DNA of 64,000 nucleotides. Source: Oopsacas minuta. Lineage: Eukaryota > Animalia > Porifera. Under the pieces are notes generated by a model. The model saw only the letters and a list, made by a program, of their open reading frames with translations, ran no database searches and was not told the DNA's origin. The stretch covers positions 449,055 through 513,054 of the forward strand of contig JAKMXF010000022.1 of the NCBI GenBank assembly GCA_024704765.1. Direction: 5' to 3'. Below are positions 11,601 to 62,938 of the stretch, one piece after another; within the stretch, counting starts at the first letter, position 1, and each line of letters starts with the position of its first letter. Position numbers and translations under genes: made by a program.

Positions 11601-14600
11601 ATTTTACTGTATATTCTATTTCTGTTAAGTCTAGGACAATTGGTCTGGGTCCCGCATCGACGATCCAAAGAAGAACAAGTGAAACAAGTAAATTTGAGCT
11701 CTCAATTAAATTGTATTCAGTTTAGTTCATTTATTTTAATCATTTATTTTATCATTTTAGCTCCATCTGGCACACCGACTAATTTCACTGCCACTTCATA
11801 TGACTCCAGGGCTATATATATTACCTGGAAGCCTCCTATCTACAGTGAACAGAATGGAGAATTGACATCTTATACACTTACTTATAATGGCGAGGAACGA
11901 GATAAAGAACTGCGAACTGAAATATTTACCAGAAATAGTCGCTCTAACCATTCTCTATACGTGACTAACCTCGAAGAGGATACTACCTTCAATATTTCAA
12001 TTATGGCTAATACTAGCAAGGGTGCAGGTCCAATAGCCTGGATTTCTGTCCTCACGCCAGAAGATGGTAAGTTACTGAAATCTGATTACGTGTTATGTAA
12101 CTTAAGTTCGAAGAAAAAATCATCAATATTTATATATAGTACCTTCATCTTCTGTTCGTAACCTAACAACCTCAACTGAGGGAATGAATGCTACATCGAT
12201 CTTTGTTAGTTGGGAAGTACCAATCTTGAATGATCTGAATGGTATTCTAGTCAATTACTCCATCAACTACTCTGGTATAGAGATTGATACAGTTCCTAGA
12301 GTCATCTACTTGTCCTATCCTAATCTGACCAATCAATCTATTACTCTAATCGACCTGGAGGAATACACCACTTACTCTATTAATGTGTCAGCTTACACGA
12401 AAGTGGGTAAAGGTCCTGATGCTATGATCACACAAATAACCAATCAAGATGGTGAGTATCTATTTCATAATTTCCTGGATATCCTATTGTGTAAATTTAT
12501 ATCTTGTTATTGTGTATATAGTTCCATCTGCTTTTCCTACGGATTTCCTCTTAAAGGCTATTTCACCAACTATCGTTAAAGTATCATGGGATCCTCCTCC
12601 CATAAACGATCAAAACGGTGTAATTACAACTTATACACTCACATACATGGGTTTAGAAAGAGACAATAAATCAAAAACTATTAATATAACTGTCTTGGAT
12701 GGTACATATGTTCTTCCAATACTAATCGGTTTAGAAGAAAATACAAACTATTTCGTTACTCTGAATGCTAATACAAGCGAAGGAGCTGGTCCTATCACTA
12801 ATTTATCTGTTCTAACTCCACAAACCAGTAAGTTGCGAATTATGCAAATTCCATTTCTTCTAGCTAACCAATTCTTCTCATATTTTCTATTTTAGTACCA
12901 AAGGGAGCTCCACGGAACTTGATTCTAACCTCAACTGATACAAGTATCCAGATAAACTGGTCAGTTCCTATAATTGACGATCTGGATGGAAATTTGACAG
13001 GTTATCTAGTCACATACCATGGCTTTAAGATTGATACTCACGAAAGAATGATACAATTCAATACTTCAAGTGATGATAACCAAACACTAACATTGAGTCC
13101 TCTTGAGGAATACACTGACTATTTTATCTCTGTACATGCGATTACTGTGGGGGTGGGTCCTTCTTTGTCTACTACATTCCGCACTTTACAAGCAAGTAAG
13201 TTATCTATCACTGCAAATCCAGAGTATACTATTGTAGCAATTGTAATAATGTAAATATGTCTTATTCAGGGCCTAGTGCTGTTCCCACTGACCTCACCGC
13301 ATCCCCAATATCTGCTCGTGCAATTTTCATAACCTGGTCTCCTCCGCCGTTTATACATCAGAATGGAATAATAACTGAATACACTCTCACCAACCAAGGA
13401 GTAGAGAGAGATATAATGAAAAGAAATATATCAATACCAACTGCTACAAGTCGTTCTACTACTTCTCTCACTGTGACAGATATTGAAGAAGATACTGACT
13501 TTACCATAGCCATTAGAGCTCACACAATTAAAGGACCGGGTCCTATCACTACAGTATCAGTGCGTACTCTTGAGAGTGGTGAGTAATTATAGAGTAAATA
13601 ATTTGAGAGACTGTATTTATATTTTAACTTAACAGAGCCTTCATCTCCTGTACGAGACTTAACAACATCAACAACAAGACAGAATGCTACATCCATCTTT
13701 GTTAATTGGGAAGTACCAATCTTGAATGACCTGAATGGTATTCTAGTCAACTACTCCATCAACTACTCTGGTATAGAGATTGATACAGCACCCAGAGTCA
13801 TCTACTTGTCCTATCCTAATCTCACCAACCAATCTATTACTCTAATCGATCTGCAAGAATACACTACTTACTCCATTAATGTGTCAGCTTACACGAAAGT
13901 GGGTAAAGGTCCTGATGCAATCATCACACAAAGAACCAATCAAGATGGTGAGTTAATCTAATACTTCTTCTTATGCATCATAGGCTGTGTATATCGATGG
14001 CTATTGTATAATCGTTATATTTTCATTTCTAGTTCCATACTTATTTACTTTTATTTCAGCTCCCGATGGAACAGTTCAGTACTTAAACACTACCGAAGCA
14101 AGTCCTTTCGCTACTCTCATCACCTGGGAACCTCCTCCGTTCCCTTTCCAAAATGGACCTATTATAAGTTATGAAATTCTGACAGTATTCTCAGATCCGT
14201 ATACAAACGTGACAGGTTTATCAAGGAACTTTACATGGCTCAATTATACAGACAGAACAGAGATATTGCTTAAGGAACTGAGACCTGGAGTAAACTTCAG
14301 TTCAACTGTTATACCAATTAACCAGGAAGGATCTGGTCCACCAATCTCAACAATATTTAGTATGATCGCAGGTAAGTAGTATTAGTGCAACTCCTATAGG
14401 GAGATATCATATAGATATATAGATATATATAGCATGGAGATAGGGCGACGCACTTATGTTCACGCAATCCGATTGTTATGAGAATTGGTATGTGAGTAGG
14501 ACATCCTTAATACGAAATCATAATAGGTATATTGATATATTGTGAAAATTATTTATTTTCCACAGAAACTATCCCAGAAATCTTAATTCCTGAATCTGAT

Positions 14601-17600
14601 GTATTCATTACTGTACAAGAGGCAGTTGTAGATGAATTCAGTGAATACTATAATTGTACAGCAAGTGGTAATCCTATACCACTCATTCACTGGATCAGGA
14701 ATGATGAAACGAGATTGGATGCTTTTAACATTACGATAAATGGGACTTCATTAGTAAGAGGGAGTAATATATTCAGATGCGTTGCTTCGAGTAGAAATGG
14801 TGAAGACTCTCTTGTCGTTTCAGTCATTCTAGTTTCTGAGGAAGTTGATGTAAGTGCGATCAGTGACGCTCTAGACCTTATCAGCAATCAGACCATTCTT
14901 AATGAACAGGAAACAGATGACCTATCCTCTCTCATCCGGACTAGCGTACAATCTGTTGATTCTAATAGAATGAATAACAGTGTCAACTCTACAGACAGTA
15001 ATTCTACCCAAATTGTCGAAATAGTTTCTGATCTATTCTCCGACCTGATTAGATTAGCAGAGAGTGGAATCTCACGGAACGCCTCAGTCAGACTTTTTGA
15101 TACTGGAGGTGAACTTGTCAGAACTTCTCAAATTAACCAAGGTGTGGCAATGAATGAAGAAATTCCATCTCTATTAGAGGTAGCTAACGCTATAATATGA
15201 GGGAAATAAATTCATATTGATAATCAAATATTATTTTAGAACATATGTCTGAATTTGTTACAAAACGTAACCAACACTTACAGACCTCTAGCTATCTCTG
15301 TTAATGGAATAGAAGATTTGGGAATTAAATTTATCGAAAATCTCAACACAACAGAGCCAAGTGTTATTGATGATCCTGAAAGCAGTATATTCTTCGAAGC
15401 ACAAGAATTGAATGAAACCGTTTATGATAATTCAACTATGACCTTTCCAATGACAAATCGAACTACAAATTCCTCTGAACAAGTTTCTGTACCTGGCAGT
15501 TTACTCCAAGCATTGATGAATTCGAGTAACAACAGTGGTATTGCTCCTAGGATTACAGTAAGTTGGGTTTTTAGTGAGCCCATTGCCTGTAGATCTAGAA
15601 TATTTCTATTGAATATATTTAATTTTCTGATATCTTCTTGTAGATTTCCACAACAGTGATTGGAGAACAACGAGAAAATATTAGCAGAATAGTTGCGTTT
15701 ACTCTTATGGATAGAAGTTCAAAACCTGTAAATCTCTTTGGAAATAGTGTAAGTAATTGAAATGTAACAAATTTGCAACCGAATTTCAGTATTCGGTTAA
15801 TCCACTATTCATGAATACTGATATTCGGTTCGATCGGTTTCAACCTTGAAATGTAATAGAATGTACTATGTATAATGTTTTGTTCACTCATATGCATACA
15901 CTGAGATTATAGAGCCCGCCTCTGGCTGAGAACATTCGATATATATACATATAATATAAGATGTCTTTGTTGTTCTTTGTTGAGTACATATAATAGCAGA
16001 TACTTTTGGCCTTTTAAAAGTAGCATTGGGAATAAAATACCCACACAATTCGTTTATACGGGACTGTTTCCTTTAGATCAATATAACACTTGAAACCACT
16101 CCAGCTCCAAAAGGGTTTGAACATGTGTGTGTTGCACTAAATAGAACTACAAATACCTGGTCAACAGTTGGTGTTAAGATGGTTAAAGAAGATGATGAGA
16201 TGAACACTACAACTTGTGAAACAAACCATTTGACTAGCTTTGCTGTATTGATACAAGTTAAACCAGTTGAAGTGTCCTTTGTTGAGAAAATAATCGCTTC
16301 AGTTTTCTCCTACTTCTTGCTGAGCATATCCTTTTTATTCCTACTGGCTACACTTATACTCTTCTGTATAGGTGGTAGGACATTCCTAAAGGTTGAAATG
16401 AACATATTATACCTTAACTATGGTATTGCCCTCACTTGTGCTAACGGTCTCTTCCTTTTCGGAGTGGAACTTGGAAAATTCCATCCCGTCTCCTGCACCA
16501 TCGTAGCACTATTCCTTCACTACTTTTGGAGTACTGTCTTTTCTTGGAGTCTCTGCAACGCAATACTCATATTTTATAGATTATTCATTGGTGAGTTATA
16601 TCTTTGGGGATGCATATTTGATATTTCTAACATTCCCCATTCCCCACTTATAATTTCAAGGAGTAGAGGTTCGTTTCTATCGAAATGAACCCAAATCGAC
16701 CAAAATCGACCAAAATTCCCCCACTTATAAAGGTTGTACTACTGTACACATCAAATTTCTCATTTTACAATTTGTCCATATTTAGGTATTTTGAGCAACA
16801 GAAAGATTTGGCCATATCTAGTCTTCTTCGGGTGGTTATCTCCCTTACCTCTGGTAATAATATCAGTTAGCATAAAACAATCTGCTTACAGTAACCATCT
16901 AGCTGGCTATTGCTGGCTTTCAAATGAAGATGGACTCATATGGGCCTTCCTGGGTCCAGTATTCCTCGTATTAATCCTGAATGCAATCATACTCACTACA
17001 AGTGCAATTCGTATTGGCACAGCCAGGAAGAATCTTGACAAAGTAAAACAATTGCGTGTTGCACTATTGAGTGCATTCATTCTAACTCCAGTACTGGGCA
17101 TGCCTTGGATCGTATCATTTGCTAAAATAATAACAGTGGGTATAGAAGATGAGCTAGCATTGGCTATACTAGACAAGTTCATAGATTGGGTATTCATTTG
17201 TTTGAATGCTCCAGCAGGAGTGGTATTCTTTATAATCATTTTCAAGAGATTCAGGGAACATCGAAAATTGCTGAGACAAAAGGAAACAGCAGGAAATAGA
17301 ACTGGTATCCCTTCTGATTTTAGCAAATTCAAGAAGAATAATCTATCTGCTCGTGGATCTATAACATCTATCACAGGGCTCACAATTGTCAACCCGAATC
17401 GGGGGCATAACAATCCTTCATGTTCATCAGAAGTATCAAACGCAGTTTATGATCCCTCTACTATGTCATCGAGCAATCAAGATGGGATCGAATTCGAGAC
17501 TATTCATGAAACAAAAGCTCCATATGATTATCCATGCGAGCAAGAGGGTGACGATGTTAAATTAACAGCTGATGATGATGATGAAACAGCAGATACTTCA

Positions 17601-28000: not shown

Positions 28001-31000
28001 CCAATACATCTTACGCATTGACTGATCTAGATGCATACACAAGCTATGAAGTGAATGTGAGTAGTTTCACTTCAGTAGGAGCTGGTCCAATCTCCAGTTA
28101 TACAGTGACTACTCTACAAGATAGTGAGTTTAATTTATTGATATATTTGTATTCTAAAATCTAATCTCATTAATTCTTTCTTAGTTCCTTCTTCATCTGT
28201 TCGTAACCTAACAACATCAACAACAAGCCAGAATGCTACATCCATCTTTGTCAGTTGGATCGTTCCTATACAGAATGATCTGAACGGTATTCTAGTTAAC
28301 TACTCAATTAGTTATTTTGGTATAGAAATTGATACAACACTCAGGGTTATATATTTGTCTGATCCTAATGATAATGAATCTATTACTCTAATCGATCTGC
28401 AAGAATACACAACATATTCTATAAGTGTAGCTGCTTACACAATAGTGGGTAAAGGTCCTGATGCTATCATCACACAAAGAACCAATCAGGATGGTGAGTA
28501 TCCTTTGCTTTCTTTTCATGATTTGTTGTGATAACATTGATTTATGAGTGACTTATTGTTTAGTTCCAACTGATATTCCCACTTCATTCTCTGCTAATGC
28601 CATCTCTCCTAACATCATCAACACAACTTGGGAACCTCCAACAGCTTACCACTTGGGTGGAGTTATCACATCCTACACACTGACCTATGCTGGAAGAGAG
28701 AGACACTCTCTCTTGAAGACTATAATCCTTACTGTCCTGAATGGTAGTATTTACATCACTCCTGCTCTGACTGATTTACAAGAAGACACTCATTATTTGA
28801 TATCTGTCCGAGCTAACACAAGTGTAGGAGCAGGACCTTGGACTAGCCTAACTGTACACACCCCTGAAGATGGTTAGTTGGTCTAGGATTTTTCTGTTTT
28901 CCTATTTTGTTAAAAGTTGTGAGCTAGTTGTACCCAGATGATGAACTACGTTTATCAATTTTTCATTTGCTAAATTCACATTCTTCAAATGTTCTTTTCC
29001 TATTATCCGTCAAGGACGATATTGAGTTGACACTAGTTAGGGCAGTCGGTAGCGGATGGTCCACAACACTATTTAATGTGCCCGCCCCCATTGGCTCATT
29101 TTATCCTCGATTTGGTACCCTAATGTATTTACAAGCTAGCTTAAAAGATAATTTCTTTATATATTTGCTGTTATTTAGTACCTTCTTCTTCTGTTCGTAA
29201 CCTAACAACATCAACAGAAGATCAGAATGCTACATCGATCTTTGTCAGTTGGGAAGTACCAATCTTGAATGACCTGAACGGTATTCTAGTCAATTACTCC
29301 ATCAACTACTCTGGTATAGAGATTGATACAGTACCCAGAGTCATCTACTTGTCTTATCCTAATCTGACTAACCAATCTATTACTCTAATCGATCTGGAGG
29401 AATACACCACTTATTCCATCAATGTGTCAGCTTACACAATAGTGGGTAAAGGTCCCGATGCTATCATCACACAGAGAACCAATCAAGATGGTGAGTATCT
29501 ATTTCATAATTTGCCAGATCGCCTATTGTGTAAATTTATATCTTGTTATTGTGTATATAGTTCCATCTGCTTTTCCTACGAATTTCCTCTTAAAGGCTAT
29601 TTCACCAACTATCGTTAAAGTATCATGGGATCCTCCTCCCATAAACGATCAAAACGGTGTAATTACAACTTATACACTCACATACATGGGTTTAGAAAGA
29701 GACCAAGAATTAGAAACAATGATTATAACTGTCTTGAATGGTACATATGTTCTTCCAATACTAATCGGTTTAGAAGAAAATACAAACTATTTCGTTACTC
29801 TGAATGCTAATACAAGCGAAGGAGCTGGTCCTATCACTAATTTATCTGTTCTAACTCTACAAAACAGTAAGTTGCGAATTATGCAAATTCCATTTCTTCT
29901 AGCTAACCAATTCTTCTCATATTTTCTATTTTAGTACCAAAGGGAGCTCCACGGAACTTGATTCTAACCTCAACTGATACAAGTATCCAGATAAACTGGT
30001 CAGTTCCTATAATTGACGATCTAGATGGAAATTTGACAGGTTATCTAGTCACATACCATGGCTTTGAGATTGATACTCACGAAAGAATGATACAATTCAA
30101 TACTTCAAGTGATGATAACCAAACACTAACATTGAGTCCTCTTGAGGAATACACTGACTATTTTATCTCTGTACATGCGATTACTGTGGGGGTGGGTCCT
30201 TCTTTGTCTACTACATTCCGCACTTTACAAGCAAGTAAGTTATCTATCACTGCAAATCCAGAGTATACTATTGTAGCAATTGTAATAATGTAAATATGTC
30301 TTATTCAGGGCCTAGTGCTGTTCCCACTGACCTCACCGCATCCCCAATATCTGCTCGTGCAATTTACATAACCTGGTCTCCTCCGCCGTTTATACATCAG
30401 AATGGAATAATAACTGAATACACTCTCACCTACCAAGGAGTAGAGAGAGATATAATGAAAAGAAATATATCAATACCAACTGCTACAAGTCGTTCTACTA
30501 CTTCTCTCACTGTGACAGATATTGAAGAAGATACTGACTTTACCATAGCCATTAGAGCTCACACAATTAAAGGACCGGGTCCTATCACTACAGTATCAGT
30601 GCGTACTCTTGAGAGTGGTGAGTAATTATAGAGTAAATAATTTGAGAGACTGTATTTATATTTTAACTTAACAGAGCCTTCATCTCCTGTACGAGACTTA
30701 ACAACATCAACAACAAGACAGAATGCTACATCCATCTTTGTTAATTGGGAAGTACCAATCTTGAATGACCTGAATGGTATTCTAGTCAACTACTCCATCA
30801 ACTACTCTGGTATAGAGATTGATACAGCACCCAGAGTCATCTACTTGTCCTATCCTAATCTCACCAACCAATCTATTACTCTAATCGATCTGCAAGAATA
30901 CACTACTTACTCCATTAATGTGTCAGCTTACACGAAAGTGGGTAAAGGTCCTGATGCAATCATCACACAAAGAACCAATCAAGATGGTGAGTTAATCTAA

Positions 31001-34000
31001 TACTTCTTCTTATGCATCATAGGCTGTGTATATCGATGGCTATTGTATAATCGTTATATTTTCATTTCTAGTACCATCTGGACCTCCACTCAATCTTACC
31101 GCCTTTCCCATCTCTCCAACTGATATTCTTGCTGAGTGGAAGGTACCTGATACTTATGAACAAAACGGTATAATTGTCCTGTTTACAATCATCTTCTCAA
31201 GTCTAAATTCTGACGCACATGACGACATCAAGCGGACCCTTCCTGTTTCAGACAACAGCACAAAATTCTGTTTTCTGTTATCAGGATTAGAAGAAGGTAC
31301 TACTTATAGTATTCGTGTATCAGCTAGCACATCAGTTGGTGAGGGTCCATTCAGCAATACTCAAGCAAGTACCTTCAATACAGGTATGTTTGTTAGTACG
31401 TGTATTGTTATTTCCAGAATTAGTCACTCTTTATTATTCGATAATTTAACAGAGTGTATCTTATGATTTGTATGTATTTAGGTCCGACAAGAGCACCACG
31501 TAATTTCTTTGCATACGAAATTACAGCTATTTCAATTTCTGTTTCTTGGGATGCACCAGAAGATGAAGACATTAATGGAATATTAGATAGATATGAACTA
31601 ACATATTCTGGGAAAGATCTCGATACACATCTTCATGTTGAGTATTTCGAAGACAATCTCTATCATTTGCAAACAGCTGAATTAACTAATTTACAGGAAA
31701 ATACCATCTACACTATACAAGTATATTTGTTTTCTTCCGGTATCAGGAGTCCACCGGCCACGATGATTGTTAACACTCTACAATCAGGTAGATAACCTAT
31801 ATTAGTATATTTCTCATTGTTCTGTTATTTATTTACTTTTATTTCAGCTCCCAATGAAACAGTTCAGTACTTAAACACTACCGAAGCAAGTCCTTTCGCT
31901 ACTCTCATCACCTGGGAACCTCCTCCGTTCCCTTTCCAAAATGGACCTATTATAAGTTATGAAATTCTGACAGTATTCTCAGATCCGTATACAAACGTGA
32001 CAGGTTTATCAAGGAACTTTACATGGCTCAATTATACAGACAGCACAGAGATATTGCTTAAGGAACTGAGACCTGGAGTAAACTTCAGTTCAACTGTTAT
32101 ACCAATTAACCAGGAAGGATCTGGTCCACCAATCTCAACAATATTTAGTATGATCGCAGGTAAGTAGTATTAGTGCAACTCCTATAGGGAGATGTCATAT
32201 AGATATATAGATATATATAGCATGGAGATAGGGCGACGCACTTATGTTCACGTAATCCGATTGTTATGAGAATTGGTATGTGGTAGGACATCCTTAATAC
32301 GAAATCATAATAGGTATATTGATATATTGTGAAAATTATTTATTTTCCACAGAAACTATCCCAGAAATCTTAATTCCTGAATCTGATGTATTCATTACTG
32401 TACAAGAGGCAGTTGTAGATGAATTCAGTAGATACTATGAGTGTGTAGCAAGTGGTAATCCTATACCACTCATTCACTGGATCAGGAATGATGAAACGAG
32501 ATTGGATGCTTTTAACATTACGATAAATGGGACTTCATTAGTAAGAGGGAGTAATATATTCAGATGCGTTGCTTCGAGTAGAAATGGTGAAGACTCTCTT
32601 GTCGTTTCAGTCATTCTAGTTTCTGAGGAAATTGATGTAAGCGCGATCAGTGATACTCAAGAGCTAGTTAGCAATCAGACTAGCCTTAACGAAGAGGAAA
32701 CAGATGACCTCTCCTCTCTCATCCGGACTAGCGTACAATCTGTTGATTCTAATAGAATGAATAACAGTGCCAACTCTACAAACAGTAATTCTACTGCTAA
32801 TTCTACCGAAATTGTAGATGCGGTTTCTGGTCTATACTCTGACGTGATTAGATTAACAGAGATGGGAATCTCGCGGAACACATCAGTTAACCTGTTCAGT
32901 ACTGGAGGTGAGCTTGTCAGAGCTTCTCAAAATGACCAAGGTATAGCAGAAAATCAAGAAATCCCATCTTTATCAGGGGTGAGTATTCCTTTTGAGGGAA
33001 ATAAATTCCTTTTGATTAACAAATAATATTCTAGAATATATGCTTGTTTCCATTACAAAATGTAACCAACACTTACAGAGCTCTAGCTATCTCTGTTAAT
33101 GGAATAGAAGATTTGGGAATTAAATTTATCGAAAATCTCAACACAACAGAGCCAAGTGTTATTGATGATCCTGAAAGCAGTATATTCTTCGAAGCACAAG
33201 AATTGAATGAAACCGTTTATGATAATTCAACTATGACCTTTCCAATGACAAATCGAACTACAAATTCCTCTGAACAAGTTTCTGTACCTGGCAGTTTACT
33301 CCAAGCATTGATGAATTCGAGTAACAACAGTGGTATTGCTCCTAGGATTACAGTAAGTTAAGAGTTGAATTTATCTGTTCAAGGAAATTATGACAATGAG
33401 AAATTGGTCTGGTGTAATTTGTCGGTGTAAGCACTGTAAGGTGACCTAAGGTATTACATTTATTATGGAGAGAAGGGATTATCCATGTGTTCATCTGAGA
33501 CTATTTCCGCCTCGGACCGTTGCATTTATGTCAAGAATTGCAGTAAATTTATCGATGTCGTATGATGGGCTAATTAGGTAGGATTTCCATATACAATAAT
33601 TCAGTTTATACGTATATGATTACTTTTAGATTTCTACAACTTTTATTGGAGAAAAACAAGAAAATATTAGCAGGATACTTGTGTTCAGTATTCAAGAAAG
33701 AAACTCAACAAAACTGATAGAGTTCTTTGGAAATAGTGTAAGTTATTTGGGAAATTACTCAATTTAATACTAACTGTATAATCACGAAGATAATAATATT
33801 CTCAGTAGAAATCTAAATATTAACAGAATTTATTACAGGTAGACTTGAGATTCGCTCAGTTCTACATTATCCCCTCCTACTCTAGCGTCATTAGATCTTA
33901 TAGATTCCATAGTATGCTCATCACTGCGTTTGAGTCCGTATGAATTTGAGTTGTTTTCATTGTTATTGTAGAACTTTGTTTCATCTTTCTGCATTTTTGA

Positions 34001-37000
34001 AGTGAAACAACAGATCAACACAATAGCTAATATTACGATTATAATTAGTAGGATTATTACTATGAAGGATAGAACGCCTGTTGTAATCACGAATATATTA
34101 CCAAAACTCCCTGGAGTATCATCAGTTGCATTACTGGCTGCAGGTTTGGGTGTGGGAGTTTGTGTATTAGTGCTAGTAGTGGTGGTTACTGTAGTAGTAG
34201 TATTGGCCATTGTAACTGTAGTAGTATTGGCCATTGTAACTATAGTGGTATTGGCCATTGTAACTGTAATAGTATTTGTATTGTTTGAGATTTGTACTAG
34301 CAATTGCGTTAGATTTGATCCTGTTACAAGATCTAATTTGTTTTCAGTAACAATACGAACTTCGCTCAATAGCAATAACATAGAGTCTGTCGGATAACTG
34401 AACTCAATTTTTAGAAAGCTAACATTAAATACATTTTCTCCATCAAATTCCAGCAACGTATCATTCTGGTCATATACCTTAAACGCATTATCCATTGCTC
34501 CAATATCTTCGATGTCTCCCCGCCAAATTCTAGTGATTAAGTTAACGATTAAGTATTTATTATTGAATAGAAGTATTATGTAAGGATTAGGTGTTCCACA
34601 GACTGACCAACCAAAATACTCCTCTGGAGAGAGTAACGGAGTATCACCTAGACAAAATATAATTGTATAAATCGGGGTTGACACTAGGTAGTAGCTTTGT
34701 TGGGTAATTTCTTGTTCGTTATAGTAGCTTAACTGAGTTTTTACTGTACTGACTATACTATAACTATAGTACCAGGGTTCTAAAATGGTTAACTGACTTT
34801 CTTAGTCAGTAGGTGGGTACATACACGTATAAATGTGTTTGTTCTCCTGTACACACCTTTGGAAATTAAGACTCGTAATTTGGCATCTATACTCGTAGTG
34901 ATATTTAGTTGCATATCTGACATTTGAAAATTTCTAATGTGTATATTTTCACACCTTTTAGGTGATTAATCATATTCCCATACATTTCTATGTAAATTCA
35001 AAAGAATGCTAGAAATTAGGTTTCAACATGTTATTATGGGCTCAACAGAGACATATAAGGGTAACAAGTACGCTGAATCCGAATTTGGCATTTTCAAAAT
35101 TTTTTTTTTTACTATAAAGTAAACAGATAATTGAATATCAAATATACGTAGAGACTTGCTCTTAACGGCTATATATGGTATTTGAGTACGCTGAATACGA
35201 ATTTCGCATTTTCAAGTTTCTCATATGTAAGTTTATTGTTAATTATGAATATAAAGTAAACAAATTATCCAAATTTCTAAAAATTGGTAGAGACATTCTC
35301 TCAACAGACATGTGGGGTACCAAATTACCTCGGCAGAGGCGGTGAATTGAGATTTTTTCCTTATCAAAATATACTATGCTAGTATGATATAACTTAATCA
35401 GAATTACCTAATGTTCCATCTGCCAGTACACCAACTCCACCACTCAATAACCCCATAGACTCTACGCCTGTGTAATTAGAATCCTCATGTTGATATCCGT
35501 CTATTAGAGCATCTGTAGATGGCATTATGTATTGCAGTAGCACCCCGTTATTGATATCAGGCTCGTCAGGATTAGCAAGATCTCTTCTACAGCCATAGAA
35601 CTCTACTCTTAAACATACATAATTTGTAACATTAGGATCTGAGGGCTGAGAAGTCTCAATAATCTAGGAACAATTATTATCTTACGTATATCATTATTCT
35701 TTATATCTATCCTTGAGTAAATTACTTACTTGTAACTTAATTTCGTCCACCGCTACTGGAGGAAAGTTTATTTTTATTAATCTCCCTCTGTTATTGAGTC
35801 CCAGCTGTTTGAGGTTTAGAATGGGATCTCCCTCTGGGTCTATATCATCCGTATACGGAGCTTGTATAGACACATACTCTGTCATGTTCATTTTACTGCC
35901 TGTTGTAACTTTAAGCTTTGTAATGTAACTGTTATCACTAAGTAAGGGAGATCCACATGAGCTACCAGGTTGGAATCCATTTTGTATTCCTATCCCTGTT
36001 AACCAGAAATGAGGTGTGCCAGGAGCTTCTTCGTGCAAGACAAACAGGGGAGAAATGTATTCTAATTCATTTCCTCCATATCTCAACGTCCAAGCATTGG
36101 TACTACCGATTAATGGGAGTTCAGATGCTAGGTTTGCTTCGGGAGCTCCGTTATTGTTAAGAACAAAACCTCTCAAAAGATTATTGTCTTTTATAACTTT
36201 CTCTAAAAGTGCTTCGTTACATTCTGGCGCTCCGAATGGCGTAATAAGGAAGCAACCAATTATTATCAAAAGCTGATAATACAAACAAAACACAGTCATT
36301 GATATTTTATTAATTAGGCGGCAATATGAAGGAGGTGATAGTTATTTTCGAATAAATTGAATTTATACAATCTTTGGGGAATCATGAGGAATGCAACGAG
36401 TTGACATGTAGAACAGAAGGGAATCTATATCTGCCTCTGTTGAACTGATTCTAGTTTAGAACCAGAAAATTAGAAATCAAATATTATACTGTCTGTCAGG
36501 TGAAACCAGGAATTCACAGATTTATGAAACATTTTGAAATGTTGGATATAGACTATTATAGATTGTACTTTTAAGTGTTTATTTAGGAAATTTGTATAAA
36601 TTACGGATTATGCCCGTTTGGATGTAATAGAATTCATAAATATACGAGTAAGCGAGTGTATGTGTTTCCTTTAGATCAATATAACACTTGAAACCACTCC
36701 AGCTCCAAAAGGGTTTGAACATGTGTGTGTTGCACTAAATAGAACTACAAATACCTGGTCAACAGTTGGTGTTAAGATGGTTAAAGAAGATGATGAGATG
36801 AACACTACAACTTGTGAAACAAACCATTTGACTAGCTTTGCTGTATTGATACAAGTTAAACCAGTTGAAGTGTCCTTTGTTGAGAAAATAATCGCTTCAG
36901 TTTTCTCCTACTTCTTGCTGAGCATATCCTTTTTATTCCTACTGGCTACACTTATACTCTTCTGTATAGGTGGTAGGACATTCCTAAAGGTTGAAATGAA

Positions 37001-39386
37001 CATATTATACCTTAACTATGGTATTGCCCTCACTTGTGCTAACGGTCTCTTCCTTTTCGGAGTGGAACTTGGAAAATTCCATCCCGTCTCCTGCACCATC
37101 GTAGCACTATTCCTTCACTACTTTTGGAGTACTGTCTTTTCTTGGAGTCTCTGCAACGCAATACTCATATTTTATAGATTATTCATTGGTGAGTTATATC
37201 TTTGGGGATGCATATTTGATATTTCTAACATTCCCCATTCCCCACTTATAATTTCAAGGAGTAGAGGTTCGTTTCTATCGAAATGAACCCAAATCGACCA
37301 AAATCGACCAAAATTCCCCCACTTATAAAGGTTGTACTACTGTACACATCAAATTTCTCATTTTACAATTTGTCCATATTTAGGTATTTTGAGCAACAGA
37401 AAGATTTGGCCATATCTAGTCTTCTTCGGGTGGTTATCTCCCTTACCTCTGGTAATAATATCAGTTAGCATAAAACAATCTGCTTACAGTAACCATCTAG
37501 CTGGCTATTGCTGGCTTTCAAATGAAGATGGACTCATATGGGCCTTCCTGGGTCCAGTATTCCTCGTATTAATCCTGAATGCAATCATACTCACTACAAG
37601 TGCAATTCGTATTGGCACAGCCAGGAAGAATCTTGACAAAGTAAAACAATTGCGTGTTGCACTATTGAGTGCATTCATTCTAACTCCAGTACTGGGCATG
37701 CCTTGGATCGTATCATTTGCTAAAATAATAACAGTGGGTATAGAAGATGAGCTAGCATTGGCTATACTAGACAGGTTCATAGATTGGGTATTCATTTGTT
37801 TGAATGCTCCAGCAGGAGTGGTATTCTTTATAATCATTTTCAAGAGATTCAGGGAACACCGACAATCACTGAGACAAAAGGGAACAGCCGGAACCATCAG
37901 CGTTACCTCTCCCTCTGCATCAGACTTCAGCAAATTCAGGAAAATACACCAATCCACTTCCGCTGCTGATGCTTCGTTTACTGAAACTACCTCAATAACT
38001 GGTTACAAGATTCGTCATACTAATAGCAATGCATCTATGATTTCCCAGAATTCTAACTCTTGCACCAATCTGATGAAAGGAACTAGTACTAGTACTACGA
38101 GAAATAAATCTCTTTTCGATGACAAAGATAACATTGGTATATACAGCACATTAGATTCAGAATATATGCATGGTTTAAGGCAAAAAAGGACTTTTAGCAC
38201 TCCTAATCGTTCATCACTACATCCAGATCGAGCTTACGAGGTCTCTTCCCTGCGAGATCTCTCCAGGGTGAATAGCAGGGACGGAATCGAAATGGAGACT
38301 ATTCGGGAGAGGAAAGTGAGTAATTCTTGCGATCTTACTTATGATAACCCATACGAGCAGGAGAGTGACAATGTTAAATTAACAGCTGATAATGATGATG
38401 ATGGAACGAAAAATTTCTTTTCCAGAGGGATTGAATTCCTCAATAATTCGTTTAAGACTTTCAGAGATAAGAGTCTAGACACAGAAGCGAACAAATCTTC
38501 AACACCAACCCCCTATACTGAATCAGATAGTAAGTATCACAATATTTACTTGGAACACTTGCACAAGGTAACTGAAAGAACACAATCTAATCCAGAAATG
38601 TCCGTAGAAGATGCTCCTGAACCTACAACTTTGGGTGGTGAAAAAATCCGTAGAAAATCTACCCCCAGCTCATACCGGCTTAGTTGTGAACACACCATTA
38701 AGGTTAATGAGCTGAAACAGTATTTTGATGATACAGCACCTAAATTACCTATTGCAAACCAACAGTTAAGCATTAGTGAGTCTGATAAGGATACTATCCC
38801 TGTGATACAAGAAAATGATAAACCTGAAGTAGGACATCCTCTCATGAAACAATACTCCTCCCCGAAACGAGAACTAAACCCGCTACCGGAACCTGAGAAG
38901 AATGAAATTGAACTATCAATAGATACGAAGCACTCGATTAACTCCCAGGAAGATAATGTCTTCAATCTTCCATCTCCTAAAGCTATATCCACGTTTGAAC
39001 CAATATCCAGTGAACCTCGCCAAAAGATGTCATCTGAAACTGTTTTGAGGAAAACTAATTCTCTCGGCTACATAGGCACAGATGATATAAAGCAGCGCAG
39101 AAGTACTGATGCACTAGGAGAACAAAATATCTCAAAGGTTGGTCACCATGTGAAATGTTTTGAGGATATTATCAGGACTAATAGTGCTGCTACTCAGCCC
39201 GCCCCTCCTCCTAAGAGAGCACATAGCACTGCAAGTATAAACCGAAATAAGATAGATGTTCCATCTTCAATGGCAAGTTTTGATCCAAACATACCGGAAA
39301 TCGCTAGTTTAAACTCTATTGATAATTCGCAATCCGAGCAACACCAAAAGCGATGTAGTGTTGATGACCAGATAACTAACCTTTGA
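19021..39386 (+). CDS. Adhesion GPCR paralogue C: signal peptide, CTLD, 26 FN3, Ig, GAIN/GPS, 7TM, ~510-aa tail (~3998 aa)
   Basis: Exons 19021-19072, 19228-19605, FN3 exons 19669-20001, 20071-20355, 20789-21097, 21167-21472, 21862-22470, 23068-23676, 23753-24064, 24412-24717, 24779-25087, 25157-25462, 26586-27194, 27271-27582, 27818-28123, 28185-28493, 28564-28872, 29179-29490, 29561-29866, 29935-30234, 30309-30617, 30675-30986, 31072-31383, 31482-31787, 31848-32159, then 32353-32978, 33035-33352, 33630-33737, 36675-37188, 37384-39386. Joined length 11997 nt = 3999 codons; ends ITNL. Confidence 0.85.
19773..19790 (+). repeat. Coding CAG/CAA microsatellite (Q6) in the first FN3 domain of gene C
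   Basis: cagcagcaacaacaacaa within WIPPQYPSYTQQQQQQRDEQLTSY. Confidence 0.85.
24102..24370. mobile_element. Different MITE-like element (~269 bp) in the other N-Q intron of gene C
   Basis: Imperfect TIRs CATTGGCGGATCCA / TGGATCTGCTAGTG (11/14 match); GC-richer than the host intron; no clear TSD. Confidence 0.5.
27618..27767. mobile_element. hAT-like MITE (~150 bp) in an N-Q intron of gene C
   Basis: TIRs CAAAGGTGTAGC / GCTTCGCCTCTG; 8-bp flanks TTTAGGGT and TTTAAGGT (7/8 match), consistent with an 8-bp TSD. Confidence 0.62.
33833..36299 (-). CDS. Nested antisense gene: DDR-like single-pass membrane protein (discoidin DS, DS-like, Thr-rich stalk, TM, short tail, no kinase), ~546 aa
   Basis: Exons 36299-35730, 35663-35408, 34647-33833 (GT-AG, phases 0 and 1; 1641 nt in frame). 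Hydrophobic N-terminus. Exon 2 is absent from the ORF track and reads IIETSQPSDPNVTNYVCLRVEFYGC...LLQYIMP...EDSNYTG...GVGVLADG. Exon 3 contains EEYFGW, LLLSEVRIV and a long hydrophobic TM. Confidence 0.8.
34194..34265 (-). repeat. 3 x 24-bp coding tandem repeat (VTMANTTT/I) in the stalk of the nested gene
   Basis: Unit gtagtagtattggccattgtaact repeated three times. Confidence 0.9.
34777..34959 (+). repeat. Dispersed repeat, copy 1 (homologous to 39583-39739)
   Basis: Shared GTTCTAAAATGGTT...CACACCTTT...AATTTGGCAT...ACTCGTAGTGA...TTTCTAATG...TATATTTTCACACCTTTT. Confidence 0.75.
35040..35330 (+). repeat. Degenerate ~120-140-bp tandem repeat (2 units plus a partial) in the nested gene's intron
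   Basis: AGTACGCTGAAT(C/A)CGAATTT(G/C)GCATTTTCAA, TATAAAGTAAACA and GTAGAGAC recur in order. Confidence 0.7.
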
Positions 39387-39582: not shown

Positions 39583-39739
39583 GTTCTAAAATGGTTGACT
39601 TAGTATCTATATATGTTTTTGCTCTGCTGTTCACACCTTTAGAGATTAAGACACCAAATTTGGCATGTGTACTCGTAGTGACATCTAGTTGTGCACCTGA
39701 TATTTGAAACTTTTCTAATGTTATATTTTCACACCTTTT
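39583..39739 (+). repeat. Dispersed repeat, copy 2, downstream of gene C
   Basis: Same motifs as 34777-34959 in the same orientation. Confidence 0.75.
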
Positions 39740-56130: not shown

Positions 56131-59100
56131 CTAATCAAGAGCATCTAATTCTTGCTTGGTAGCTAACTTAGTAGCTAGTAGCAGTAGTATTTGCTCCATT
56201 TTTTGGGTACGCTCCTGGAGATCATCACATTGGTCCTTGACACCATTCAGTTGTTCCTTTATCTGATAGGTCTCCTCAGCTAATTCGTCCAGCTGTGATG
56301 GTTCTTGAATCAGAGCAGAGCGAATCTTCTCACAAGTCAATTTATTCTCGAATAGGAATGGAAAAACCTTAAATTTTATGAGATCCACATAATCAAGATT
56401 GTTCGGTTTCAAATACTGTGTAGTTATCATGAATAGTTTCCTAATGCCGTAAGGTAATTTAGCCTCCGTGTTTAACACCAATACTACCTGCATTTCAAAT
56501 CGTTTCAGTTCTGCGTTTTCTTGCACCCCCTTGATATCATCTACCGCCAAACCAACAAGTAGATTCATTAACAGGATCGGCATCATAACGATGAATATTA
56601 CCCACATTATGATAGCAGAAACGTAATAGAATAGAGGTTGACTGGGATCCTCGAATATACTGTCATACTCAAACTCACCAGTCGTCATTGTTAACGTTTT
56701 AAGCAGTGCCTTGAGTGGATTACTAAACGCATAGCAACCTCTGTTTTCCTGAAGCAAGGACATGTAAAATGCCATTCCGAAAGCTACGAGAAAGAACAAG
56801 GCCATCACTACGATCTTCAGGAAAGTGAATAGAATATCTACATACATGAGAATGTAGATTCCGATCAGAGGAAATCTCTTCATTGAAACGAAGAAATTTA
56901 TCCAAGTCAGGAATACAGCAAATATCCCACACTGCCATGGCCAGTCATAAGGTAGTGATGCGCAATAGAAAGCGTATATCGGATCTACCATGAAGAGGAG
57001 GATCAAAATATGACCAGCCATTTCAAGAACATTCTCAAAGGAAGTTATATAAGAAATCGGGTTGAGTATAAATTGGATTACTTCTATAATAATTCGCATA
57101 ATAGCTAGAATTGATATTATCGTGACGATAGCAATCGTTTGACCAGCATGGATGGTAATTCCAGTGAACCAGCTACCAGTAAATCCATACATATTGCAAG
57201 TAGTACTGTCATTAGACACGCTACACGGAAATGGAGAAATGAACCTTCTATCCCTGGGATTAGGATAGAACCATACAAACATAGTAAGACCTATCACCAA
57301 CAGAAGATACAGGAATAAATTAGGATAGTATAGGAAGCGGCCTACTCTATTCCATTTAGAGTTTAGTATGCTAGTCACGATAGGATGGTTAATCAGCTTC
57401 GTATGTCCAGATTGGGCGACAAGATAAAGAGGGTGATTGTCAATGTTTAGGAGAGAAGGACGGAAGTTAAGATGCCATGGCATTTCTACGTCTTTCACTA
57501 CCTCAATGTGTCGCTTAGTCTCTCCTCCGTGTTCCTGTCTGTGTATAACATTCTTTTGATAAGCCTCCATATCATCTAGGAATCTGAGATCGAATTTAAC
57601 TTCATACTGAGAATCTCTGTAGTCAACATTCTCTCTAGTACTGTTATCGGTGGTCCATCTGTTGAATAAGGTTAGAGTTAAATCAGGCATCTTCTTGATC
57701 ATCTTACGGAGTGGAGAATTACCATCTTCTCCGTAATTCATGAGACAGGATTCAAACTTAGGATGATTTAAGAACAATTCCACACAATCCTTTTCATCTG
57801 CTTCTATTGCCATATCCAGCGGAGTCTCCCCTTTATGATTAGTAACAGTGATGCTAGCATCGTTTTCCAATAAAATCTTAACACATTCATATCTGCCTTT
57901 CTCACAAGCTAGATGTAGAGGAGCTGCTCCGTGCGTTTTCGTGTCTAAACAGTCAATAGAAGCATCTTCTTCAACTAACAACCTCACAATAACATCGTGT
58001 CCGTTATTAGCAGCTAGATGAAGTGGAGTTAATTTGAGTCCATTTATAGCTGAGACATTAGCTCCGTTGCTAAGCAAAAGTTGTGCGGAATGCAAGTGTC
58101 CTCCCTCAGCAGCTAGATGTAACGGTTGGTTAGAATTCTCATCTTCATCAGCTACCAGATCAGAAATTAATCCGGGTCTTGACTTAGCAATAACTTCTAT
58201 TACTTTAGCTTTTCCTGATTTAGCTGCTTCATGTAATGGAGTTGCTTCGTCTTCATTTCGTTCTACTACATGTGCTCCATTTTTCAACAATATCTATCAC
58301 AATAAATAATACAGATAAAATTCAATAATGAAGGATATACGTATTTTGGTGTAACATATACAAACGGGATGCCAAGAGGCCAAAAATATCCCAATTTCTG
58401 CCAAATTCCCCGTTTGTGGAAGTTCATTTGTATGGGACTAGGAATTCGCTCTATTTATTTTCACTCCCTTTACCAGAAGTTCCCCGTTTGTGGAGTTTCA
58501 CTTTAGTATGTTATTTACCTGTACAATCTTGTGGAAGCCTTTCTCTGCAGCTACGTGTAAAACTGTATTGTCTCTATTTCCGTGTTCATTGATACTCTTC
58601 TGTATCCTTTTATCCTGTAGCAGAGCCTCGAGTAGCTCCAGATGTCCTTCTTCCACTGAATAGAACAGAGCAGATTTACCGTTACGGTCTAACAAGAGAG
58701 GATTACAAATCCTGTCTTTCAGTAGCCTAACACATACCTTAGTATACCCCCAGATAGCTCCTATAATGAATGGAGTGTTACTAGCATTGTTGGTACGATT
58801 AACAGAGGCCCCTCGTTTGATGAGGAATGATATCATATCAACTCTGTTATTTCTAGCTGCGTAATGCAACGGAGTAGCACTCTCATTGTCTATACAGTTG
58901 ACCTTAACATTTACATTCTCTAGTAGCATAGTAGCTATTTCTATGTGTCCCAGCTGTGCAGCTAAGTGGAGAGGAGAGGCTCCACTCGTGTTCCTCTCCA
59001 TGCCAGTAAATTTCTGAGTTATACACATCCTAACTGCTTCCTGAGATCCAGACATTACAGCACAATGCAACACACTGTTATCATCAACATCTCGTTTGCT

Positions 59101-59577
59101 TAATATGTTCAATCCTTCTTTACGGAAGTTTATATGTAGGAATAATTGCCCGAGAACATTTACATGACCTTCTGTAGCGCACAGATGGAAGGCAGTTTCA
59201 TCCTCAAAGTCACTGGCAAATACATTTCCTGGTATCTTAAGAATAAGTTCTATTATCTCCTTAAACCCGTAATAAGCTGCAATGTGTAGACAGTTCTGAC
59301 TCTGCTCGTCTTCTTTCCATGGGTCAGCTCCAAACTCTAACAGAGTCCTAACTCCCTCCACATTTCCTCTCAAGCAAGCGTAGTGCATTGGTGTCATGCC
59401 ATACTTATCTTTTTTGTCCTTCATCGCGTCATTAATAAGCAGGAGCCTTAGACAAGAGAGGACACTACTTTCTCCTCCAGCTTCACCTTGCTCGTAGTCT
59501 TCATCCGGTTTTATCACGTTCTTAGCAGCAAAATGTAGAGGTGTCTGATCCTCATCCGTCTGAGGGTCCAAATTCAG
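56131..59577 (-). CDS. TRPA1: TRPA-family ankyrin-repeat cation channel, 5' end unresolved
   Basis: Exons 59577-58519 and 58293-56131 (intron 58518-58294, phase 0). Multiple TPLHxAA ankyrin repeats, six TM segments, pore TLTMTTGEFEY, S6/TRP-like PILLMNLLVGLAVDDIKGVQENAELKRFEMQV, C-terminal coiled coil. Confidence 0.9.
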
Positions 59578-60178: not shown

Positions 60179-62938
60179 TTAAATCGGAGATACTTGTGGA
60201 TTATCGTCATCAAAAGGATCGCTAGCATCTATCTCTATATCTGGAAGAGAAGTTGACTCTGTAGAGCTGACACGCCATGAACTGAGACGTTGAAGAATTG
60301 ACTCAAAATTTATCCTCTTACCAGGATCCATATCCCAACATTCTAGCATGAGAGAGTAAATTAATTGAGGACAATTATCTGGCTTTGAGAGGATCTCTCC
60401 TCCTTTCACCTTTTCGATAACTTGCTCATTTGTGAATCCGTACCAGGGTTGCATCGCGAAAGAGAACACCTCCCACATTAGTACACCGAACGACCAAATG
60501 TCTGTTTGAATGGTAGCCTTACCGTACATGATTGCTTCAGGTGCCATCCATTTTATCGGGAGAAGTGCTTCTTTCCCAATTCTATAATAATCCGATTTAT
60601 AAACATCTTTACTCATTCCAAAGTCTCCAATCTTGACAACCAGATTCTTCCCAACTAAACAATTCCTCGTAGCTAGGTCACGGTGTACAAAACTTCTCAT
60701 AGCCAAATAGTGCATTCCTGAAGCTATCTGATTTGAAATGTTAACCAAGTCACTAGCGGATAGGACAGGGGGGTCATCAGAAAGTTCACTCTCCGTCCGT
60801 GATCTAGCTGGACAGGGAATGTTATTGAAACGCTTGATATAGCTACTAGCACATCCCCTTAGATAATTGTTGAGATCTCCTTTCTCCATGTATTCGAACA
60901 AGAGACAGAGAGGAGCTGATTTGTCTTTGAAAGAAACTCCTAAAAGTTGTAAAATATTTGGATGATCAAATCGGAGCATGATATCTGCTTCGCGTTCAAA
61001 GTCCATTCTATTCTTCATTGTAGCTCCATCATGTAGAGTCTTAACCGCGATTAATGTAACTTTCTCTCCAGGAATTATAGATTTAGCTTCTGCAAGGTCA
61101 ACAGAGCCAAATTGTCCTTGTCCTAGTTTCCGTAGAAATCGAACAGCTGATCGAGGAAACTCTTTCCTATCAGTCATAGTAGTTTTGGTATTGAAAGGAA
61201 GATAGAATTGATTTTCAGCTACTTTGCTCTCTGTGAACTTTGAACTGCAGAATTGTGGTTTGTTGACCTGTCTATAGTACATAACACATAGTACTATTAT
61301 ACCAATGACGATTACCACAATCACAACGAATATGATTATAATCCCAATTATCAGAGGAAGTGTACTTGATTCTGTAGGCTGAGGCCCTTCAGTCACGCCC
61401 TCAGATGTTGTTATAAGGTCAAGAGACAAGATTGCTTTGATTCCCAGGGGCACACAGGTTTCAGGAGATGATGTGATATCATTGCACTCATGGACCCAAG
61501 GGAATCCTCTGTAGAGATCACTTACACTGAACATATTCCAGGCCTCCTTACAGTTACTGTACCAAAAATCTAGACAGTCTGCTTTACAGTAGTCATCGAA
61601 GGGAGAAACTATTCTTATCGGGTCATCAGTCGGAGTACATCGACGGAACAAGTTATTGCACAGATACGTCATGCCTGCTCTGTAGCAAGGATCAAATTCG
61701 TTTGATGAAGTGAGGGAAAGGAGCAGGTTTTTGAGGGCGTAGGCCTGATCATCTAATTCAGCGCTTTGTGAGTAGTAGCTAGGAGTGTTGTTGAGAAATG
61801 GTGAGCACTCATTCATGGTAACGATAGCACAGCTAGAAACGGGTTCCACGGTTATAACTGGATTGACATTTAGTTTAATTCCCTTCCTATCAGATGTTAT
61901 TGTGCCATTAGGACGGTTATAAGATCTACAGAAGTACAGACCCTCATCACTAGTAGATACAGTATCAAATATTAGAGTATTGCCATCATGTATATTAACA
62001 GCATCTTCAAAGTTTCCTGATATAGTCAATGCCTTAAACCATTCAAACTCTGGATCTGGATAACCATATGCATTGCAATTGAGAACGATACTCTCTCCCT
62101 CAGTAACATTTCTAGATTCTGGAAAACTGTATATAGTTGCAGCTACGTGTTCTTCAACTAGAATCTCATTTGATACTTTGAACTTAGATTCACCATTAAT
62201 ACTACAGAAAGAAAGAATACGGAATTGAATATTATCGCCAAGAGACAATCCACTTAGTGTATATGAATAAGATCCAGCTTTTTCATCTATAATGTTGAGA
62301 ACCCGCTGTTCGAGATAAAGCCATTCGAGAGAGTTAGGTCCCTCTGATGAACTGCTCCAAAATCTGTAGGATATGTTGAAAAAGGTAAGGCAGTGTGGAC
62401 CGTTGTGTGGGAACACTTCCCAGTTCAATATAACATCCCCTTGAGTTGGAGAAGACAGATCAAATGCAGACGGTTTAGGAGGCGATTTCTTTATATTCGC
62501 ATCGTCAATAGGGGTTTGTGTTGAAGGATCAGTAGTATATACGTAAGTAGTGGATGCAGTATCAACAACAGTCACCAATGTAAAAGAGTTTCCTAAGGTA
62601 CCTGGTAGTACGCAAGTAACGAGATAAGCTCCAGTAGCATTAAAAAATCCTGTCAACGTGGAGTTCTTCCATTCAGAATCGCCCTTAGATGGGCCTTGTG
62701 TATTGGTTATATTGAAATTTTCGTTTGTATCGCTAATTATTGAATCTTGACTATAGATTTTGTAGTTCCATATGAAATCCACGTCTACATCTGTAAGAAT
62801 TTTAAAGCTTAGACTGAATGGCTCATTAATCAATACTTCAAGAGTTCTCTCAGGAAAAATTTTTTCAGATCGTACAATGTCAAAAAGTGAAAACAGCTGA
62901 AGCAATACAACCAAGAAGAAAGGTGGGATCAATTTCAT
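60179..62938 (-). CDS. Receptor tyrosine kinase of the MuSK/ROR/Trk group (Ig-like, FN3, Ig, Frizzled CRD, TM, TK), intronless, ~919 aa
   Basis: ATG at 62938 (MKLIPPFFLVVLL signal peptide); LNCNAYGYPDPEFEW...DEGLYFC Ig domain; Cys-rich Fz domain; LGQGQFG, HRDLATRNCLV, DFGMSKDVYKSDYYR, LPIKWMAPE. Confidence 0.92.
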   Translation of the reverse strand: MKLIPPFFLVVLLQLFSLFDIVRSEKIFPERTLEVLINEPFSLSFKILTDVDVDFIWNYKIYSQDSIISDTNENFNITNTQGPSKGDSEWKNSTLTGFFNATGAYLVTCVLPGTLGNSFTLVTVVDTASTTYVYTTDPSTQTPIDDANIKKSPPKPSAFDLSSPTQGDVILNWEVFPHNGPHCLTFFNISYRFWSSSSEGPNSLEWLYLEQRVLNIIDEKAGSYSYTLSGLSLGDNIQFRILSFCSINGESKFKVSNEILVEEHVAATIYSFPESRNVTEGESIVLNCNAYGYPDPEFEWFKALTISGNFEDAVNIHDGNTLIFDTVSTSDEGLYFCRSYNRPNGTITSDRKGIKLNVNPVITVEPVSSCAIVTMNECSPFLNNTPSYYSQSAELDDQAYALKNLLLSLTSSNEFDPCYRAGMTYLCNNLFRRCTPTDDPIRIVSPFDDYCKADCLDFWYSNCKEAWNMFSVSDLYRGFPWVHECNDITSSPETCVPLGIKAILSLDLITTSEGVTEGPQPTESSTLPLIIGIIIIFVVIVVIVIGIIVLCVMYYRQVNKPQFCSSKFTESKVAENQFYLPFNTKTTMTDRKEFPRSAVRFLRKLGQGQFGSVDLAEAKSIIPGEKVTLIAVKTLHDGATMKNRMDFEREADIMLRFDHPNILQLLGVSFKDKSAPLCLLFEYMEKGDLNNYLRGCASSYIKRFNNIPCPARSRTESELSDDPPVLSASDLVNISNQIASGMHYLAMRSFVHRDLATRNCLVGKNLVVKIGDFGMSKDVYKSDYYRIGKEALLPIKWMAPEAIMYGKATIQTDIWSFGVLMWEVFSFAMQPWYGFTNEQVIEKVKGGEILSKPDNCPQLIYSLMLECWDMDPGKRINFESILQRLSSWRVSSTESTSLPDIEIDASDPFDDDNPQVSPI

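Follow-up and report, generated by a model that had tools for sequence, protein, structure and literature searches.

Introduction

A cytoplasmic tyrosine kinase is part of the definition of the discoidin domain receptor (DDR) family. Among the collagen receptors of animals, DDRs are considered the oldest (PMC10785288), and the human isoforms DDR1d and DDR1e, which carry the DDR ectodomain plus the transmembrane segment, are kinase-deficient (PMC4789497). Glass sponges are without a basement membrane or type IV collagen (PMC10280926). Here we analysed a 64,000-nt stretch of the genome of the glass sponge Oopsacas minuta (contig JAKMXF010000022.1, positions 449,055 to 513,054; hereafter the window), in which a minus-strand gene at 33833-36299 had been proposed, from the DNA letters alone, to encode a kinase-less DDR-like receptor and to lie antisense inside an intron of gene C, an adhesion G protein-coupled receptor (GPCR) gene. 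We find that this nested gene encodes a selected, kinase-less, 546-aa type I membrane protein with a DDR-type ectodomain, and that its antisense nesting is conserved.

Results

Structure of the nested gene and its host intron

Joining the minus-strand exons 36299-35730, 35663-35408 and 34647-33833 yielded a 1641-nt open reading frame (ORF) of 546 codons plus stop. The predicted product is letter-for-letter identical to NCBI LOD99_13706, an O. minuta 'hypothetical protein' of 546 aa, and the three-exon gene model of the original prediction was thereby confirmed. Exon 1 (35730..36299, 570 nt, ending in phase 0) holds the start codon, the signal peptide and most of the discoidin (DS) domain. It is followed by intron 1 (35664..35729, 66 nt, phase 0), by exon 2 (35408..35663, 256 nt), which encodes the last DS strand followed by the opening ~60 residues of the DS-like domain, and by intron 2 (34648..35407, 760 nt, phase 1). 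Exon 3 (33833..34647) encodes the remainder of the DS-like domain, an NxT/Thr-rich stalk, the transmembrane helix and the cytoplasmic tail, and ends with the stop codon (33833-33835). Both introns are of the GT-AG type, with the ends GTAAGT..CCTAG for intron 1 and GTAATT..TCTAG for intron 2. Intron 2 is swollen in O. minuta by repeats, namely internal direct repeats and a 133-nt element of which a second copy, 83% identical, lies at 39608-39739 in the 3' region of the host gene; a small mobile element has probably inserted here. The O. minuta stop codon is overlapped by a poly(A) signal, about which we make no claim, since it is not conserved in the orthologues.

The entire nested coding sequence lies inside a single plus-strand intron of gene C (33738..36674, 2937 nt, ends GTAAGT and ..TTTAG), with 95 nt between the nested stop and the host donor and 375 nt between the nested ATG and the host acceptor. 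The host exon before this intron (33630..33737, 108 nt) encodes a GAIN-region strand (..ISRILVFSIQERNSTKLIEFFGNS). The host exon after it (36675..37286, its 3' limit being that of the open frame rather than a mapped splice donor) carries the GPS motif (CETNHL/TSFAVL) and the beginning of the seven-transmembrane region, and matched the Pfam models GPS (35.7 bits) and 7tm_2 (28.7 bits). The equivalent introns of the adhesion GPCR genes A and B had been noted to hold nothing similar. This was borne out: the intron of gene B (15749-16076) is 328 nt long, as had been given, its counterpart in gene A is also short (the matching exon starts at 3882), and a tblastn search of the window with the nested protein returned only the nested gene itself and nothing similar in genes A or B.

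Conservation and selection in glass sponges

Relatives were found by a search with exon 3 at the level of ORFs, after which the contigs were inspected and six gene models were built; the assemblies were labelled glass sponges by their similarity to O. minuta. Six further assemblies (L001-L006, with L007 repeating L006) carry the same three-exon gene, which makes seven assemblies together with O. minuta. All six models have intact frames and the same intron positions, with a phase-0 intron 1 of 55-68 nt and a phase-1 intron 2 of 55-69 nt. The order of the locus in the six relatives is ADSL, the host exons with 7tm_2 and GPS, three opposite-strand ORFs, and the host GAIN exon with fn3 exons. Throughout L001-L007, as in O. 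minuta, the nested coding sequence lies on the opposite strand wholly inside one host intron, flanked by the orthologues of the two host exons described above. Phospholipase B and SDR genes also belong to the syntenic neighbourhood. A more distant orthologue (L011, SRR2064712) was found on a contig that ends too soon to include the host. In one relative only (L004:4645-5676), a DDE_3/HTH transposase ORF lies between ADSL and the host GPCR. In another (L006:10254-10310), intron 2 is 57 nt long, in frame and without stops, and ORF-based callers therefore fuse exons 2 and 3 into a 349-aa ORF with a false insert of 19 residues.

The nested protein is 45-70% identical between O. minuta and the relatives, compared to 89-93% for the neighbouring ADSL. 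The ratio of nonsynonymous to synonymous substitution rates (dN/dS) was 0.10-0.22 over the whole gene. In the closer species pairs the DS, DS-like and tail regions, each taken by itself, gave comparably low values; some estimates for the stalk, transmembrane segment and tail reached 0.44-0.52 (L002-L003). Synonymous sites were saturated in the deeper pairs, with dS above 2 for several. The last eight residues of the tail are fixed even in the 45%-identical orthologue, apart from one V to I change among the orthologues.

These results bear on whether the locus is a pseudogene or an annotation artefact, derived by truncation and decay from a kinase-bearing DDR-like gene. No kinase is encoded, repeats have expanded intron 2 in O. 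minuta, and we saw no transcript of the nested gene directly; the published Braker/Augustus annotation drew on unstranded RNA-seq hints (PMC10280926), a point that tells against the gene as we read it. However, the ORFs are intact, both splice sites are kept, and the C-terminus is invariant in all seven assemblies. The intact frames, low dN/dS and conserved C-terminus indicate that the gene is not a truncated relic, and we consider an artefact or pseudogene extremely improbable. The gene is real, as had been claimed, and these data show it to be a functional, long-conserved and selected protein-coding gene of glass sponges.

A DDR-type ectodomain

The nested protein begins with a signal peptide (residues 1-24 of LOD99_13706), followed by a first (DS) domain of ~190 residues, of which the exon 1 part includes Cys27 and Cys115. 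Exon 2 encodes the closing motif VCLRVEFYGC (Cys207, Cys215) and then enters the second (DS-like) domain of ~165 residues, which continues in exon 3 to YFGW ... LLLLSEVRIV. The DDR1/2 motifs named in the original prediction were all found in the predicted order: CNEAL, AW, GIQ, PPVA, VCLRVEFYGC, LLQYIMP...DSNYTG...GLLSGGVGVLADG, YFGW and LSEV.

Three region-specific profiles were built: A2, made from orthologues and paralogues and covering the end of the DS domain and the DS-like region; A4, covering the DS-like region only and excluding the VCLRVExYGC strand; and A3, covering exon 1. Against the PDB, profile A2 matched DDR1 (4ag4, E 2.2e-8) and the isolated DDR1 DS-like domain (8pe9, E 7.9e-6), and profile A4 matched 8pe9 (E 1.7e-5) and 4ag4 (E 4.5e-5). 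Neither found anything significant in the PDB besides DDR1. The DS-like match extends over the first 60-100 residues plus the last strand. Two glass-sponge paralogues (L008 and L010c), which match the nested protein across both domains with E 1e-36 to 1e-40, passed the Pfam model PF21114 (DDR1-2_DS-like) with 31.6 and 29.3 bits (threshold 27). The profiles and the paralogues together place a DDR-specific DS-like domain directly after the DS domain.

Structure prediction, for which a comparison with DDR ectodomains had been asked beforehand, gave the same assignment. The AlphaFold2 (AF2) model of the whole protein had a mean predicted local distance difference test score (pLDDT) of 62.6, with about 80 in the first domain. 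Its best Foldseek match in the PDB was the DDR1 ectodomain with DS and DS-like domains (4ag4_A, E 4.5e-8), followed by the tandem-discoidin proteins neuropilin (b1b2) and factor V/VIII (C1C2). Fold comparison identified residues 25-221 as an N-terminal discoidin (F5/8 type C) domain, with matches (VIA Z 12.5-14, root-mean-square deviation about 3 Å over 145-155 residues) that included DDR2 (2wuh). The proposed DDR-type ectodomain was thus upheld by the top whole-model match, by second-domain profiles that matched DDR1 alone and by paralogues that pass the DDR-specific Pfam model.

Several results weigh against this assignment, and they bear on whether the protein is instead a generic discoidin adhesion protein comparable to CASPR, neuropilin or DCBLD, in which the motifs would be convergent or shared by all discoidin domains and not a mark of DDR descent. 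The DS fold is not closer to DDR2 (Z 12.5) than to neuropilin, CASPR2 (Z 13.8) and factor VIII, so that the first domain does not favour DDR. When used alone, the nested protein scored 19.5 bits against Pfam DDR1-2_DS-like, below the cut-off of 27, had no match to Pfam F5_F8_type_C (PF00754), and reached DDR1 4ag4 in the PDB with E 0.03; with the three exons and the whole protein as single queries against Pfam and the PDB, all DDR matches were sub-threshold. The exon 1 profile A3 found no relative in the PDB. The DS-like domain modelled alone (pLDDT 62) had no significant Foldseek match and resembled only CBM32-type sandwiches, with Z about 7, although a poor stand-alone model of this domain is not evidence against homology. 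Against generic descent, the DS-like profile without the VCLRVExYGC strand still matches DDR1 alone in the PDB, and the paralogues above the DDR-specific Pfam threshold have tyrosine kinases attached in the order known from DDRs. We therefore regard a generic discoidin protein as very unlikely.

A search with exon 1 among 1.84 billion cluster representatives returned exon-sized sponge ORFs only and no canonical DDR. A homologue search with residues 20-400 returned no paralogue among proteins of 300-955 aa, the other assemblies being stored as ORF-level calls only.

In DDR2, the collagen GVMGFO pocket is formed by Trp52, Thr56, Asp69, Arg105, Glu113, Asn175 and the Cys73-Cys177 disulfide (PMC10785288). 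Of these residues, just the equivalent of Cys177 (Cys207) was aligned, in the profile A2 match. The position of DDR2 Arg105 may be a conserved Gly in the nested protein, as suggested by an alignment made by eye, not by a tool; a Gly at this position would speak against a canonical collagen pocket.

Transmembrane segment, tail and absence of a kinase

Downstream of the ectodomain, the protein had been predicted to continue into a Thr-rich stalk, a transmembrane segment, a CC pair and a tail of about 58 aa ending in QVYL. We found all of these parts, with a tail of 57 residues ending in QVYL. The glycosylated stalk of O. minuta, and of O. minuta only, contains a 24-nt tandem repeat (34194..34276, minus strand, 3.5 copies) that encodes TMANTTTV units. 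The transmembrane segment (34007..34096, minus strand) comprises the hydrophobic residues 460-489, IFVITTGVLSFIVIILLIIIVILAIVLICC, which AF2 modelled as a helix over 458-497. Together with the N-terminal hydrophobic signal, this gives a single-pass type I topology. The CC pair follows the hydrophobic segment, and one juxtamembrane Cys is kept in all orthologues. Pfam matches to TMEM154, DAG1, RIFIN and similar models all fell on the Thr-rich stalk plus the transmembrane segment and were rejected as compositional; one orthologue exceeds the TMEM154 cut-off (32.3 vs 30.3 bits).

The C-terminal LSESQVYL (33836..33859, minus strand) is present in 7/7 orthologues with the one V to I change, and the stop always follows directly. 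The ending SQ(V/I)YL-stop fits the class II PDZ-ligand pattern (hydrophobic-x-hydrophobic-COOH) in all seven, as a pattern match only.

No kinase is attached to this tail. A tblastn search with sponge DDR-like kinase exons returned no kinase-coding match on the minus strand below 33833, and the stop after the 57-residue tail is kept in the seven assemblies, both in agreement with the earlier observation of no kinase downstream. By its sequence, the nested gene is kinase-less. As the cytoplasmic tyrosine kinase domain is missing, the protein should not be filed as a DDR receptor tyrosine kinase, although the DS, DS-like and transmembrane parts are present; within the DDR ectodomain family it is a variant that lacks the kinase. 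The window does contain an intron-free gene for a 930-aa receptor tyrosine kinase with an Ig domain (60182-62971, minus strand; PK_Tyr_Ser-Thr, 294 bits). We considered it as a downstream exon and rejected it, as it is a separate, unrelated gene 24 kb away on the 5' side of the nested gene.

Place in the glass-sponge DDR-like family

Other members of the DDR-like family in glass sponges are arranged in tandem; some of them have tyrosine-kinase exons, others have tails carrying tyrosine motifs. One such array (L010) has DS and DS-like exons followed by a transmembrane segment, a juxtamembrane stretch and PK_Tyr exons, which is a true DDR architecture. Within it, two adjoining genes, a and b (L010:161-5496, ERZ25072730 ctg83205), are near-identical in the ectodomain, the transmembrane segment and the first juxtamembrane residues; gene a stops after a tail with tyrosine motifs and gene b continues into PK_Tyr exons. 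They form a paired kinase-less and kinase-bearing receptor arrangement in a glass sponge.

In a maximum-likelihood tree of DS domains, the seven nested orthologues and L011 fell into one clade (support 95/94) that stands apart from the tandem-array paralogues, both with and without a kinase. This indicates that the nested gene is an old, separate branch and not a recent truncation.

The coexistence of kinase-bearing and kinase-less DDR-like genes in glass sponges raises the possibility that the nested protein is a decoy or dominant-negative receptor, which would pair through its ectodomain or transmembrane helix with kinase-bearing paralogues and dampen or redirect their signalling. In its favour, DDRs dimerise through the transmembrane helix. 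Such a role has been proposed for the human isoforms DDR1d/e, which are kinase-deficient truncations (PMC4789497). However, the nested DS domain shares only 25-28% identity with its counterparts in the kinase-bearing paralogues and belongs to a separate old clade, whereas the ectodomains of the L010 a/b pair are near-identical. Moreover, the tail is strongly conserved, with dN/dS as low as in the ectodomain, and because it is under constraint, we believe that the protein has an output of its own rather than serving as a passive decoy. A decoy function therefore appears unlikely, though conceivable.

The host gene and its neighbourhood

Gene C (29172-37893) shares long, near-identical DNA tracts with the adhesion GPCR gene B (12133-17295). 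Three tracts were aligned: 29172-31077 with 12133-14038 (97.4% identity), 31826-33359 with 14038-15564 (93.1%) and 36663-37893 with 16065-17295 (99.4%). Between the tracts, the small GAIN exon is only 78% identical, and the C-terminal tails are 73% identical. The last tract begins 12 nt ahead of the acceptor of the intron around the nested gene, and the 328-nt intron of gene B shares nothing with its equivalent in gene C. This pattern suggests mosaic gene conversion, or else a recent partial duplication in which the nested gene was skipped. Elsewhere in the window, two minus-strand ORFs at 56134-59571 with ankyrin repeats and an Ion_trans domain make up a TRP-like channel gene.

The nested gene could form a unit with its host, either with expression coupled to that of the adhesion GPCR through transcriptional interference or shared chromatin, or with the two proteins cooperating at the surface. 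The nesting has been kept in seven assemblies despite saturated synonymous sites, and the recent duplicate or conversion partner B is without the nested gene, the identity tract ending at the intron border. However, the whole neighbourhood (ADSL, phospholipase B, SDR) is also syntenic. As an intronic gene cannot easily leave and its surroundings are syntenic too, the conserved position needs no function, and we find a functional unit with the host rather doubtful. A conserved two-gene module of adhesion GPCR and nested gene with tied or mutually exclusive expression and the same matrix cue, for which the conserved position speaks, seems improbable. In such a module, a collagen-like ligand would be captured by the kinase-less DDR-type ectodomain, which would either pass it on to the long fn3/Ig ectodomain of the GPCR or compete with that ectodomain. 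The simplest account of the nesting is a frozen accident that arose through genome compaction, rather than a regulatory device.

Discussion

Of the original prediction, the missing kinase, the DDR-type ectodomain and the nesting are supported, and the collagen-receptor, decoy and host-coupling readings are hypotheses. Taken as a whole, the locus is probably best explained by a kinase-less DDR-like branch with a ligand-binding ectodomain and PDZ-type docking of its tail, nested in its host by a frozen accident. The two-domain ectodomain would bind a ligand outside the cell, which could be a glycan or a matrix protein, for instance a fibrillar collagen. As the tail has neither a kinase nor the multiple tyrosine motifs of the paralogues, output would most likely proceed through C-terminal docking, with the invariant ...LSESQVYL-COOH as a putative class II PDZ-type site. 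Docking may link the protein to a scaffold beneath the membrane, in the manner of neuropilin, syndecans and neurexin/CASPR, and lateral association with kinase-bearing receptors is possible. Our best guess is a ligand-binding adhesion or co-receptor molecule for which the PDZ-ligand-like tail may provide the anchor. For this protein, PDZ binding, the ligand and the partners are all inferred, which is a weak side of this explanation.

The DDR-like family thus appears diversified in glass sponges and includes an old, single-locus, kinase-less branch with a tightly conserved short tail. This branch offers a natural setting in which to study the function of a DDR ectodomain in the absence of kinase signalling, and raises the question of whether matrix binding coupled to a scaffold preceded kinase signalling or runs alongside it. 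The conserved pair of host and nested gene likewise provides a clean test of the regulatory meaning of nesting in a compact, early-branching genome.

Comparison with known systems

Compared to the tandem arrays of glass sponges such as L010, the nested gene belongs to the same family and is matched in both domains, and the arrays also hold kinase-less members. It differs in being present at its locus as one copy per assembly, outside the arrays and in an adhesion GPCR intron, and in having a tail that ends in LSESQVYL and lacks the multiple tyrosine motifs of the array paralogues. We found no paper describing the nested gene, its branch, its tail or its conserved nesting. What the locus adds is a distinct old branch that is single-copy at the locus, a PDZ-ligand-like tail, and nesting in an adhesion GPCR gene that has been kept across deeply diverged glass sponges.

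DDR1 and DDR2 share with the nested protein a signal peptide, a DS domain closed by VCLRVE(L/F)YGC, a DS-like domain, a juxtamembrane stalk and a single transmembrane segment, all in the same order, and the DS-like blocks D.xY.G...GG.G.L.DG, Y.GW and LL.SE(I/V) are common to them. Unlike DDR1 and DDR2, the nested protein has no cytoplasmic juxtamembrane region or kinase, its DS-like domain is shorter, its DS domain is too diverged for Pfam F5_F8_type_C, and its second DS disulfide seems to use Cys115, which lies in another loop. DDR1d and DDR1e are splice or frameshift products of a kinase gene, whereas the nested gene is a separate gene in which the kinase-less state is fixed and which has its own conserved tail.

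The class II PDZ-ligand pattern is carried by syndecans, neurexin/CASPR and ephrin-B. CASPR2/neurexin IV and the syndecans resemble the nested protein, with its putative PDZ ligand ...VYL, in being type I proteins with short tails that end in hydrophobic-x-hydrophobic-COOH, but their ectodomain architecture is otherwise unlike. Neuropilin-1/2 combine tandem discoidin-type domains (b1b2, the second-best Foldseek match) with a single transmembrane segment and a short, kinase-less tail. This tail ends in a PDZ ligand, and neuropilin is a co-receptor for kinase receptors. The neuropilins differ in having CUB and MAM domains and a class I SEA-COOH ligand, and they show no specific sequence relation to the second domain of the nested protein. 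By analogy of architecture, neuropilin would be the closest working analogue of the nested protein.

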